A stretch of 64,000 bases of DNA from Guillardia theta CCMP2712. Its lineage: Eukaryota; Protista; Cryptophyta. The stretch spans positions 174,698 through 238,697 of the forward strand of contig NW_005434672.1 of NCBI RefSeq assembly GCF_000315625.1. The letters run 5' to 3'. The translations under genes were made by a program, and so were the position numbers. The notes beneath the pieces are model-generated. The model saw nothing but the letters and a program-made list of their open reading frames with translations, searched no databases and was not told the DNA's origin. Positions 5,690 to 10,591 of this stretch are shown one piece after another. The stretch's first letter is position 1, and the number at the start of each line of letters is the position of its first letter.

Positions 5690-6200
5690 CACCCGGGCCG
5701 GAAAACCAAGCCTGAAGCCTGTCGGCACTGCCGTCCAGACTCTCGCCGGGGGGCCGGGCAGTCCGGCGGTTCAACCCGGTGACCGTTGAACGGCGTGCGG
5801 CCGCCCGCAACGGGTGACAGTTCATGATCATGGCATAGGCTGAGGGCCCGGACGCCGTCGGATGAAGCATCCGTGACTCTGTGAATTAAAGAATTCAGTC
5901 CGTCTGTTCCCTTCACAGAGTCACCCGGTGATGTACGCCGGTACTCAGAGTCTGTTCCGAAGTTCTCATTCAACCGGCCGGGCGTTCACGGTGGCACGGT
6001 TGGCCCTCTCAGTCTGCCGGGGGCGGCCAGACTCTGCCGACCGGACCGCGGCACTGCGGCACCCGAGACTCTCGGACCGTACGGTCGCCGCCTGTTCCGA
6101 ACCGTCCGGCCCGCCGGGCCGCGCCCGGCCGCAGGCGCTGTTGGCCCTCTTATTATTTTGAAACCGTGATCGGGTCATCGAGCGATGATCATCGGTGATC
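5690..6200. repeat. GC-rich palindrome-dense intergenic island
   Basis: Dense CCGG/GGCC/GTAC/GATC/GTGAC words, e.g. ACCGTACGGT, CGATGATCATCG; no credible ORF. Confidence 0.6.
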
Positions 6201-7195: not shown

Positions 7196-7470
7196 TAGCT
7201 GAGGAACATTTCCTTTCAACTTTCACCTTGCTCTTGTATAACAGTAAATTCGCTTTTTGTTTAGCTTGAGTATCATATGATTCAACTTTTGTTTTGTCAA
7301 AGTTTAATTTGCCCATCATGAACCGTGGCAACTTCACTGGCCAGCGAGTCAGGCCCTCGCCGCTGGCAGGCTGGCCCGGCCCGCAGGCCCGGCGCACTGC
7401 CGCCGCGAGCCGCTGTGACAGTGTCGCGGCCTGGTCTTCGAGGCTTCGCCGAGTCGGCCCAGTGGACTTA

Positions 7471-9611
7471 CATTCTGGGGTCAAACCGCGTTGGTTCTCG
7501 TCCCATATTTTCAAGGGGGTGGTGCATGGGAAAATGGGGGTACACGGCGTGTGATTCGCGCAGGTTGAAATTCTGTACTGTTGAAATTCAAACCATGTTC
7601 AAAACTGTGATTAAAAGTGATTTTGGATGTTTAGCTTATCGTTTCCTGGTACCTTCTAAAATGTTTTAATTCTACACGCCATCACCCACTACCCCAGTGC
7701 GTCTTCCCTCGCCATTCTTCTCTCATGTCGCGAAGCTCTTCTCTGCGGATCCTTGTCTTCAGTGTTTGAGTTTTGTGCGAGCATGTTAGCCCAAGTTGCA
7801 GTGACTCGCAGCAGGTGACTCTCATCAACATCTCTCTTCGTCAAACCCTCTGCGTCGGTTGGTGAAAATGTTATTATGCCATAATCTGTTTCAAAGTCTG
7901 GATCATATTTTTGAACGCATCCATGGAAGGGGACGAGTAAACCACGAACACACACGAGCATGAAGAGACTCTCAAGTATTTTGTGAGAGGAGAAGGTGCA
8001 AATGAACTCGTTCCATCACACAGGTATGGAGTTCTTCTGTGGATTGTTCATTTTCTAATCGTTGTGCACAGGTAGCAAAAGCCTGGCGATGTTGAGAACT
8101 AGATTCTGCATGCTTGTAGCTGAAGCGTATTGCAAAAGTCCAAGAGCTTTATTCCATGCAGACTTTCATCTTTATGTGCTGGATGGAATATCATATTTAT
8201 GAGAGATGCTTCACTGTGCCACATGACTTGTTCAGATCATGTTTGAACTTCTCCGCCTTTGAATGATGCATCTCTTGTTGCATGACTTCAAAACACTTTG
8301 TGAAGATGCATAGTCTTGTATATATCCATGTCCACATGCTCAAAGCCTTGCCTCTTTGTGACAAACAAGATTGAAACCTCTTCAAGACAGCAAACTCAAC
8401 CGCACGGTGTTGGATGGCAGTGCACCTACAGCATGTGCTTCCATTCTGTTGTGCGCGCAGTTGGAGAAGTTCCATATGACATTGTGGTTGTCATTATCAT
8501 TGTCTGGGAGTCCGTGTCAATTTGCTGATAGTTCGACATCCTGAGATAAACGCTTCGAATGAATAATAAATGTCAAATCAGATATCACCTCCAACCTTGA
8601 TTCTACATTAATGTCAGTCTGGTTGCAACGCACAATGGATTCTTGCATGCCAGCTTACAAGCTTGAGTCTTGATCCCTGATATGATCTGAGGCTTAATTG
8701 GACGTCAAAAGCTCCACCATTAGGGAAGCCAAGCAAAGTTGATGTATTTCAGCAAATATGCAAACATGCAAATAACCTGAATGAGGAGAGTTTGAAGAGA
8801 GGAGGGAAGAATCAACAAGAGCGTCGTGAGAGTCAAGTAATTGGCATATTTCAAAGAAGCAGAAGTCATCAAAGTTGTTCTGATGATGTGAAGCAACGAT
8901 GTATCGAAGCGTACAGAAGATTTGCCGTGCCGAGGAGGGAGTCAAGTGAGATGTGATTGCACCTTAATTAAGCGGACTCGTCATTATCTTACAGATTATC
9001 TTATTCAGTTCACTTTTCAGATAAAGTACATTACTCTGAGAGCCCAGAAGTCTTGAAGAGAAATTGATGATACGATTGACTTAGTCGTTGGAAATGTAGG
9101 ATGACGAACTCATGCAGCCTTGATCCACTTCTACAAGATCACCATGTCAGAATATGTGCTGGATTCTTGATGCCAATGGTACCTTGCGATCATGTTCTTA
9201 CTTGGCGGTTCTTCACCTGTGCTCATGGTGGCAGCTCGCTGACCTTGCTGCTGTGCTCGCCCGGCGGCTCAGCATGACGGCTCGGAGTGCGATTAGACGA
9301 TGGGAATGATGGGAGCGTTTCCCCACCCTCATTGATAGGGTGGGTCATCAAAATTGTTTTAGATAGTACAAATTAGCAGTTATGAACCGTTACTCAGTAC
9401 AACTGTTTGTACCACGGATTCGAATAAACAATTCATTGCCGTTAAAACAAATGGACACGCCAGTTCAAAATTTGAAGCACCCCTACCACTGATATTACCG
9501 AGCAACACCCCTCAAAAAACATGGGGTACACTACCACCGGTATCCTATGAGAACAGCATACGCATTCCTCTTTTGCGTTAATAAAGACCAACGCGGTTTG
9601 ACCCCAGAATG
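7471..9611. mobile_element. 2141-bp TIR DNA transposon (probably non-autonomous or decayed), 25-bp perfect TIRs, 3-bp TTA target-site duplication
   Basis: CATTCTGGGGTCAAACCGCGTTGGT at 7471-7495; its exact reverse complement at 9587-9611; TTA at 7468-7470 and 9612-9614; AT-richer interior between two GC-rich flanks. Confidence 0.85.
7689..9226 (-). pseudogene. Decayed coding remnant inside the TIR element (possible transposase relic)
   Basis: One minus-strand frame reads HKYDIPSST*R*KSAWNKALGLLQ...VHND*KMNN...PV*WNEFICTF...QKYDPDFETDYG...EDALG* with scattered stops. No catalytic motif confidently recognised; 5' limit uncertain. Confidence 0.4.
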
Positions 9612-10591
9612 TTATCCGACTCGATGAGACGCTGCCCGGCCTCCGTGGCAGGCTGCTGACACGGTTGCTGAGTGCGCCGCGGCGCCTCCGAGGCCGTACG
9701 GTAGTCACCGTGACGGTGGCCGCAGGGCAGGCTCCGAGCCAGCGGCCTGGCCGCAGCGGCTGCGCAGCCGGGGGCGGGCATCCTCAGGAGAATCTTTACT
9801 CAGGCTGCCCCCAGGGCCCGAGCTGACTCAGTGAGGACTCATTTTGAGTGACCGCCGGGCGGCCCGGCCCGGCCTTCAGTCAGTGCCGTCAGTTCAGTAG
9901 CCGGGCGCCGCGAGGATCGTCTGACGAACCCCGAAACTTCTCGAAGCATCAATTCACCACCACCGGTTCTTGATTGTCCTAGGACAAAAAAAAAGAGTGG
10001 GGTGTAGACTCAGATTTTGGGGGTACGGTACTGGGGTGTCTGTGGTTAGGAAGTAAGGGTATCATGTTATAGCAATTATCATAGACTACGAATTATGAAA
10101 TACCCAGTGAGAGCTGCCTTGTTCTTCTAATTTTCTGGTAGACCCTTCAGGGTCAGAATCCTACCACCACCCCTTGCACCCTTATACGCTTGTCAGCACC
10201 CTGCGAAAGCGGATCAACGTACAGGGCATTCACACACCCGTACCGCGTTTCGTTCACCCTACCCACCCCTAAACTATTACGAAAGCCCAGTATACCACCG
10301 TACCAGGACCATCCTCTTTCACACTACCCCTGGATTCCATGAATCGACATCAGAGGGTACCTTCGGGGCAAAGGTAGGGTCCATATGTGAGTTGAAACAA
10401 GGTGTGTGCGCGGGGATTTGAGGGGTACTGGATGTTTGCTACAAAGATGACGGTGTGTTCCAGGGTGGGGTATCTTACAAGGTGAACAGCTGCAAGACCA
10501 CGGGGTGGTGTTTTCAGAGGGGGTGGGTACCTGGTGGGGCATTTGCCGGTGGGGTACAGCAAAGCGAAGCTCTGAGGTGTCCAAAGCAAGC

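Follow-up and report, generated by a model that had tools for sequence, protein, structure and literature searches.

A non-autonomous transposon family of Guillardia theta and its autonomous partners, which encode a predicted RAG1/Transib-fold transposase and a BAH-like protein

RAG1 and the Transib transposases share a core made up of dimerization/DNA-binding, pre-RNase H, RNase H, zinc-binding, and carboxyl-terminal regions, in which a DDE triad is accompanied by a CxxC motif past the second D and a pair of histidines ahead of the E. Transib elements start with CACWRTG within termini of the CA....TG type, prefer GC-rich targets, have ends that are asymmetric beyond the terminal repeat, and duplicate 5 bp of their target; 3-bp duplications are reported for some Drosophila Transibs (2026 preprint). 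In RAGL transposons such as ProtoRAG, the gene for the RAG1-fold enzyme is joined inside the terminal inverted repeats (TIRs) by a partner gene for a RAG2-like six-bladed kelch propeller, which may or may not have a PHD finger. The alga Aureococcus also has RAGL transposons (AanRAGL), which carry both a RAG1L and a RAG2L gene, with 5-bp duplications and a RAG1L that can be detected by sequence (PMC9435367). More broadly, EnSpm/CACTA, Mirage, Chapaev, and Transib, together with Plavaka, ESTA, and Lanisha, make up the CMCT clade, whose members have in common the motifs C(2)C and H(3-4)H, termini of the CA..TG type, and duplications of 2-5 bp, and in which the similarity of ESTA to RAG1 was detected by HHpred alone (PMC12730594). 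Here, we describe a transposon copy within a 64,000-nucleotide stretch of the genome of the cryptophyte Guillardia theta CCMP2712 (contig NW_005434672.1, positions 174,698 to 238,697; the whole of this stretch is called the window), along with the family to which it belongs.

The window element is very probably a non-coding passenger of an autonomous G. theta family, which encodes a transposase with a predicted RAG1-type fold (open reading frame [ORF] 1) and a BAH-like partner protein (ORF2). It is non-autonomous and mobilized in trans, as an earlier note on this DNA had already proposed, because a copy that is 100% identical is found elsewhere with another target-site duplication, and because autonomous partners share its termini and subterminal motifs. 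The element and its parts are located in the window as follows.

7471..9611, no strand: non-autonomous transposon copy, 2141 bp, 43.8% G+C, non-coding interior
7468..7470: TTA, left copy of the target-site duplication
9612..9614: TTA, right copy of the target-site duplication
7471..7495, + strand: left TIR ("B-end"), 25 bp, first heptamer CATTCTG
9587..9611, - strand: right TIR ("A-end"), 25 bp
7511..7518, + strand: B-end subterminal motif TCAAGGGG, approximately 41-48 nucleotides from the tip
9564..9581, - strand: A-end subterminal motif TTAACGCAAAAGAGGAAT, positions 31-48 inward from the right tip
7534..7545, + strand: subterminal ATGGGGGTACAC, element position 64, present in 12 of 14 copies
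9521..9531, + strand: subterminal ATGGGGTACAC, present in 11 of 14 copies
7564..7589, + strand: doubled GTTGAAATTC, with starts 16 bp apart (7564-7573 and 7580-7589)

The inverted match between the two TIRs is exact across 25 bp, and the element reads from CATTCTG through to CAGAATG. These termini, the TTA on either side, and the tandem arrangement of GTTGAAATTC had all been described in the earlier note, which was made from the sequence alone, and each is borne out here. The same note had recorded ATGGGG(G)TACAC near both ends; the 2 motifs concerned, ATGGGGGTACAC and ATGGGGTACAC, are indeed present and kept in most copies, but they lie on one strand and form a direct rather than an inverted pair. 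Both GTTGAAATTC repeats are found in most copies as well, while the subfamily formed by the C10, C47, and C60 copies lacks the motif.

A search of the G. theta CCMP2712 assembly (87 Mb in 669 contigs) with the 25-bp TIR, allowing up to 3 mismatches, returned 41 matches (20 forward and 21 reverse), most of which form pairs approximately 2.1 kb apart. The reversed control sequence gave none in either orientation, which puts the repetition of the terminus well outside what chance would give. With its terminus repeated and paired throughout the genome, the TIR cut-and-paste transposon that had been proposed is real. The genome contains approximately 17 full-length 2.1-kb copies in addition to fragments, with identities to the window copy of 88.5-100%. 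The 14 copies that were reconstructed in full fall into 3-4 subfamilies, with identities of 98-100% within and approximately 92% between them. One copy (G000:C14:311658-313798) matches the window copy at 100% over 2141 bp, yet has different flanks and a TCC duplication, and the C10, C47, and C60 copies are mutually identical. A piece of 99 bp from another copy of the family (G000:C10:744888-744986) is located 3 bp past the C10 copy. Because identical copies are present at different sites with different duplications, the family has moved recently, and the subfamily structure would point to several recent bursts of transposition.

The 3-bp sequences flanking the TIR pairs agree in 13 of 16 cases, where the chance of agreement is 1/64 per pair. 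The matched duplications are TTA, TCC, GCC, TTC, TCA, GCT, GAC, TCA, AAC, AGC, TGA, GTT, and CTA. The duplication is therefore 3 bp long and independent of sequence, and the TTA at the window copy, which the earlier note had set beside the TWA duplications of PIF/Harbinger and Zator, is one instance of it: none of the other 12 fits TWA.

An autonomous copy was found at G000:C154:116038-121368 (the C154 copy), with a TIR pair 5.3 kb apart and an AAC duplication. It contains 2 intronless genes, ORF1 (920 amino acids, + strand) and ORF2 (381 amino acids, - strand), which are convergent and lie tail to tail. In a second copy (G000:C285:586-26312; the C285 copy), matching CTA duplications lie 25.7 kb apart, and homology to the C154 copy stops past the subterminal tandem repeats, to resume approximately 20 kb further on. 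This disrupted copy thus has approximately 20 kb of extra DNA, which may be a large insertion or cargo, or else stem from faulty assembly. The sequence piece that holds its left part (586-1732) contains 102 N. In the C154 copy, approximately 4 tandem units of 262 bp, with a mutual identity of 73-92%, are located between its left end and ORF1 (G000:C154:116267-117231). As the first 52 codons of the 920-amino acid frame fall within this repeat, the ORF1 start codon is probably located further downstream.

Between the window element and the autonomous copies, similarity is limited to the termini, where it covers 72 and 135 bp at 75-81% identity. Within these regions, the window copy, the C154 and C285 copies, and the C10 subfamily all carry an identical 18-mer, TTAACGCAAAAGAGGAAT, at positions 31-48 of one end, and TCAAGGGG at approximately positions 41-48 of the opposite end; the A-end motif corresponds to the left end and the B-end motif to the right end of the C154 and C285 elements and of the C10 subfamily. 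Since these end-specific motifs differ from one another, the 2 ends are unlike beyond the 25-bp repeat. In addition, the TIR variant of the C285 copy (..CGCGTTGGT) best matches the subfamily of the window copy, and that of the C154 copy (..CGCGGTAGT) matches the C10/C47/C60 subfamily. ATGGGGGTACAC is absent from the C154 element. Although the terminal similarity is short, the link between the window element and the autonomous copies is nonetheless specific, judging from the shared motifs and their positions.

The pair of genes is not restricted to these 2 copies. More than 10 divergent lineages in G. theta, with identities ranging from 22 to 97%, keep ORF1 and ORF2 adjacent and convergent at every locus inspected. 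Two lineages with ORF1 identities of 59% and 39% share the TIR heptamer CATTCTG and have GTG and TCA duplications, and a 3-bp duplication was observed in three lineages altogether. The TIRs of more distant lineages start with CATAGCG and CATGCCG. Comparison of the C154 and C285 copies gave ratios of nonsynonymous to synonymous substitution rates (dN/dS) of 0.31 for ORF1 and 0.18 for ORF2, and both genes are therefore maintained as proteins under purifying selection. C19 holds elements of two different lineages, which share 59% and 39% ORF1 identity with C154. They are found at C19:752951-757883 and C19:769608-774409, 12 kb from each other, with a further ORF1 fragment between them at 761792.

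Transcriptome sequences of Hanusia phi, a sister cryptophyte, included homologs of both ORF1 and ORF2. A profile of ORF1 searched against 1.84 billion representative proteins gave no more than 90 matches, all from Guillardia, Hanusia, metagenomes, and a green alga, Cymbomonas tetramitiformis. A 931-amino acid protein of C. tetramitiformis and metagenome proteins, some of them 1300-1770 amino acids long, are distant relatives of ORF1 (E values of 1e-14 to 1e-4), and Pfam detected no domain in 16 such distant relatives. The metagenome contigs Ga0172373_10058536, Ga0172376_10035653, and Ga0172376_10105138 carry ORF1/ORF2 pairs with 95-96% identity to the C47 and C9 lineages of G. theta, and come from either a very close natural relative or culture carry-over. 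These three short contigs were all that the metagenome scan returned, with no new taxa or termini.

ORF1 matched no described protein family by sequence. Pfam, searched without the newer RAG1 subdomain models (PF26100 and others), gave no family match for ORF1 and 9 paralogues; searches of PDB sequences with ORF1, both as a single sequence and as a profile, were likewise negative, and neither RAG1 (PF12940) nor Transposase_21 (PF02992) matched anything in the whole genome. Because sequence methods were blank, the homology of ORF1 is argued from predicted structure, motifs, and language-model features. In the ESM Atlas, the nearest named clusters to ORF1 were RAG1. An AlphaFold model of ORF1, based on an alignment of 63 sequences, reached a predicted local distance difference test score (pLDDT) of 86.3 and a predicted template modelling score (pTM) of 0.76. 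All 49 of its Foldseek matches at E <= 1e-3 were RAG1, HzTransib (Helicoverpa), or amphioxus RAGL structures, with a best E value of 5e-9, and the next fold was that of Hermes, at 0.024. Structural alignment with VIA-align gave Z scores of 19.4 for RAG1 (422 residues, placing model residues 198-777 on RAG1 480-1024), 19.2 for HzTransib (414 of 480 residues), and 17.8 for BbRAGL (433 residues), followed by 11.4 for the P element (361 residues), 8.9 for ISCth4 (265 residues), and 7.6 for Hermes (292 residues).

Seven residues of ORF1 (D413, D511, C532, C535, H807, H813, and E838) are invariant in 9 paralogues. In the model, D413 falls on strand 1 of the RNase H-like sheet, D511 closely follows strand 4, and E838 is part of a long helix. 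This is the placement of a canonical DDE triad, making these 3 residues candidate catalytic residues, while C532-x2-C535 with H807 and H813 would form a putative zinc-site pattern. The local motifs of mouse RAG1 around the second D with its CxxC, and those around H..H...E, are probably similar to those of ORF1. On the basis of these features, ORF1 is predicted to be a DDE transposase with the fold of RAG1 and Transib.

Similarly, ORF2 and 9 paralogues had no match in Pfam, BAH and RAG2 included, and a search of the ESM Atlas with ORF2 returned nothing usable. The ORF2 model (pLDDT 79, pTM 0.78) has a mixed alpha/beta architecture. In VIA-align, residues 52-201 matched 13 different BAH proteins with Z scores of 8.3-10.3 over 99-135 residues, and the next fold class (Tudor, KOW) remained below 6; Foldseek also placed BAH on top, with an E value of 3e-5. 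The BAH matches included PBRM1, ORC1, EBS, DNMT1, ASI1, ASH1L, AIPP3, Rsc2, and Sir3, among others. We therefore assign residues 52-201 of ORF2 to a BAH-like domain by predicted fold. A RAG2-like propeller is excluded by the mixed alpha/beta model, by the BAH matches, and by the absence of any propeller among the matches listed. By analogy with RAG2, ORF2 may act as an obligatory accessory subunit, linking the transposase to chromatin.

Compared with the systems outlined above, the Guillardia family resembles Transib and RAG1 in the predicted fold of ORF1, which extends over approximately 420 residues and all 5 regions of the core, in its candidate DDE triad with the CxxC and H..H motifs, and in its CA....TG termini, its apparent preference for GC-rich targets, and its asymmetric ends. 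It differs in that ORF1 has no similarity to these proteins by HMMER or to Pfam RAG1, and in that its first 200 residues do not align to the nonamer-binding domain of RAG1. Unlike Transib, the Guillardia elements duplicate 3 bp and are always accompanied by a second gene, and their ends start with CATTCTG, CATAGCG, or CATGCCG, which agree with CACWRTG in the CA and, in one lineage group, in the TG. With RAGL, the family shares a RAG1-fold enzyme and a partner gene inside the TIRs, with ProtoRAG the convergent, tail-to-tail arrangement of these genes, and with AanRAGL the intronless genes and an algal host. The partner is BAH-like instead of a RAG2-like propeller, however, the duplication is again 3 bp instead of 5 bp, and ORF1 is far more divergent than the sequence-detectable AanRAG1L; Guillardia is not mentioned in the text or supplements of the paper on AanRAGL (PMC9435367). 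Within CMCT, the termini and the duplication length are as in other members, and the detection of RAG1 similarity by structure-aware methods only is shared with ESTA, while an H..H spacing of 5, the BAH-like partner gene, and the cryptophyte host set the family apart. From EnSpm/CACTA it differs by the lack of a Transposase_21 (TNP2-like) match and by termini starting with CAT.. rather than CACTA.

The family is thus set off from Transib by sequence, duplication length, and the CAC terminus, from RAGL by RAG2L, and from EnSpm by Transposase_21 and the CACTA terminus. Save for the H..H spacing, it appears to fit the definition of the CMCT clade. We consider it a divergent, apparently unnamed lineage within this broad clade, and the window element an ordinary derivative of this lineage that is not autonomous. 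The earlier note had held that the element fits neither PIF/Harbinger and Zator nor CACTA/CMC neatly. This stands with regard to PIF/Harbinger and Zator, but a place in CMCT can be given, and CMC, which the note had set aside, was in fact the nearer lead, given the RAG1/Transib-fold DDE enzyme, the CA..TG termini, and the 3-bp duplication.

Several observations weigh against the interpretation as a passenger of a RAG1-fold, BAH-partnered family. No link of ORF1 to RAG1, Transib, or EnSpm was seen at the sequence level in Pfam, PDB profiles, or 1.84 billion proteins, and the correspondence of the D/D/E residues and the putative zinc site was read from invariance, secondary-structure position, and spacing. 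The spacing of 5 between H807 and H813 is outside the 3-4 quoted for the clade. Furthermore, no CMC structure has been solved, and a fold match cannot tell "Transib-like" from "CMC-like". The carboxyl-terminal half of ORF2, which holds an invariant GSxYxEGP block, received no fold assignment. At the level of the insertions, 3 of 16 TIR pairs lacked a matching duplication, although the mismatch at the C10 copy is probably due to a nested or adjacent insertion, and no paralogous empty site was found when one was searched for.

Two accounts of the wider affinity of the family deserve comparable, limited credence. Tentatively, the cryptophyte elements could represent an unnamed branch of the RAG1/Transib-CMC radiation at the level of a superfamily, in which a RAG1-fold enzyme is obligately paired with a convergent BAH-type reader. 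Alternatively, with the element and its mechanism unchanged, the family might be an ordinary member of a named CMC lineage (Chapaev-, Mirage-, EnSpm-, or Lanisha/Plavaka-like), perhaps one already in Repbase, and not a new lineage or a separate one on the Transib side, which we regard as possible but unlikely. En/Spm-type elements have a second gene too, and the ESM Atlas results for ORF1 also included a DUF1280 row. CMC elements typically show both the 3-bp duplication and CA..TG termini, and the C(2)C and H..H motifs are found throughout CMCT (PMC12730594). In addition, as the PDB contains no CMC structure, any CMC enzyme would have its closest solved fold in RAG1/Transib. Against this alternative, Transposase_21 was found in neither ORF1, nor 8 paralogues, nor the whole genome, and the termini start with CAT.., neither CACTA nor CCC. 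The search of 1.84 billion proteins yielded only the 90 matches described, with a transposase Pfam domain in none of the 16 scanned, and we found no literature tying Guillardia to the CMC/CMCT superfamilies.

A further alternative concerns ORF2, which could be no transposition factor at all, but either a gene captured from the host or an independent selfish gene that happens to lie beside the transposase. BAH domains are common among host chromatin proteins. The gene is nevertheless adjacent to and convergent with ORF1 in every lineage examined, down to approximately 25% identity, lies within the TIRs, and has a dN/dS of 0.18, and outside the elements it has relatives only among cryptophyte transcripts and in near-identical copies from metagenomes, making this explanation improbable.

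It is more doubtful still that the 2.1-kb family arose by internal deletion from an autonomous copy and holds a decayed transposase or partner gene. Deletion is a frequent origin of non-autonomous elements, and short minus-strand ORFs are present in the interior, where the earlier note had seen a decayed minus-strand coding frame. The longest ORF in the window element, however, is at most 92 amino acids. No ORF is open in all subfamilies, as each is broken by stops and frameshifting indels, and tblastn with all ORF1 and ORF2 lineages gave no match in the interior, leaving likeness to the autonomous copies confined to the terminal stretches of 72 and 135 bp. A decayed gene in the interior is rejected on the strength of the tblastn result and of the lack of ORF conservation. 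Finally, an element of the PIF/Harbinger or Zator type with a TWA target, as suggested by the TTA on either side and the 3-bp duplication, and by the second ORF in the case of PIF/Harbinger, is excluded for practical purposes by the lack of TWA preference (1 of 13 matched duplications), by the RAG1/Transib fold predicted for ORF1, and by the absence of DDE_Tnp_4, a Tc1-like domain, or a Myb-like ORF from the autonomous copies.

If the window element is a passenger of the RAG1-fold family, it would retain just what is needed in cis, namely the 25-bp TIR starting with CATTCTG and the end motifs TTAACGCAAAAGAGGAAT and TCAAGGGG. Autonomous copies of the C154 and C285 types, which have the same ends, would move it in trans. 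By analogy with RAG1/Transib, the transposase may bring the two unlike ends together, nick at the CA tip, and release the element while hairpins are formed on the flanking DNA; insertion of the 3'-OH ends 3 bp apart would then give rise to the sequence-independent 3-bp duplication. ORF2 might play a part parallel to that of RAG2 with its PHD finger, though it is no homolog of RAG2. While the family and its copies, their duplications, the partner elements, the predicted folds, and purifying selection are shown here, the catalysis, hairpin chemistry, role of ORF2, and targeting are inferred.

With respect to targeting, the window copy interrupts a GC-rich island of approximately 300 bp, the 2 halves of which lie on either side of the target-site duplications.

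7340..7467: left half of the split GC-rich, GGCC-rich island
9615..9790: right half of this island, GC-rich; the 200-bp tiles that reach 68% G+C or more have their starts at 9601-9701

Across the family, flanks have a mean G+C content of 60-62%, against 51% in the window, and at least 65% G+C was reached at 12 of 42 ends, compared with 2.7% of the tiles in the window. Per 100 bp, flanks contain GGCC 1.52 times and window tiles 0.33 times, a 4.6-fold enrichment. The family appears to prefer GC-rich, GGCC-rich islands as insertion targets. Further islands of this kind, with at least 68% G+C and rich in GGCC, are present in the window near 5951, 35851, 42651, 62301, and 63701.

We found no account of this transposon family in Guillardia in the literature. 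What is added here is the non-autonomous 2.1-kb family, the matched end motifs, the spectrum of duplications, the BAH assignment, and the preference for GC islands, and approximately 20 Guillardia "hypothetical proteins" gain a transposon annotation. Should a comparison with Repbase give a named CMC lineage, the finding would become routine annotation. The origin of V(D)J recombination poses the open question of how a transposase of the Transib type became dependent on RAG2, a second subunit that reads chromatin. For this question, the Guillardia family offers a useful comparison: a RAG1-fold enzyme, invisible to sequence searches, that is always paired in tail-to-tail arrangement with a different protein that putatively binds chromatin. 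The family also broadens the duplication lengths and terminal sequences known for the RAG1/Transib fold. Judged from the identical copies at different sites, it appears to be active now, in an algal host that can be cultured, and its short non-coding passenger could act as a natural reporter substrate. If the cryptophyte elements do form a branch at the superfamily level, the tail-to-tail design of a RAG1-like enzyme with a chromatin reader would either predate RAG2 or have arisen twice, and the origin of the RAG1-RAG2 partnership could then be tested in an alga that grows in culture and whose elements are active at present.

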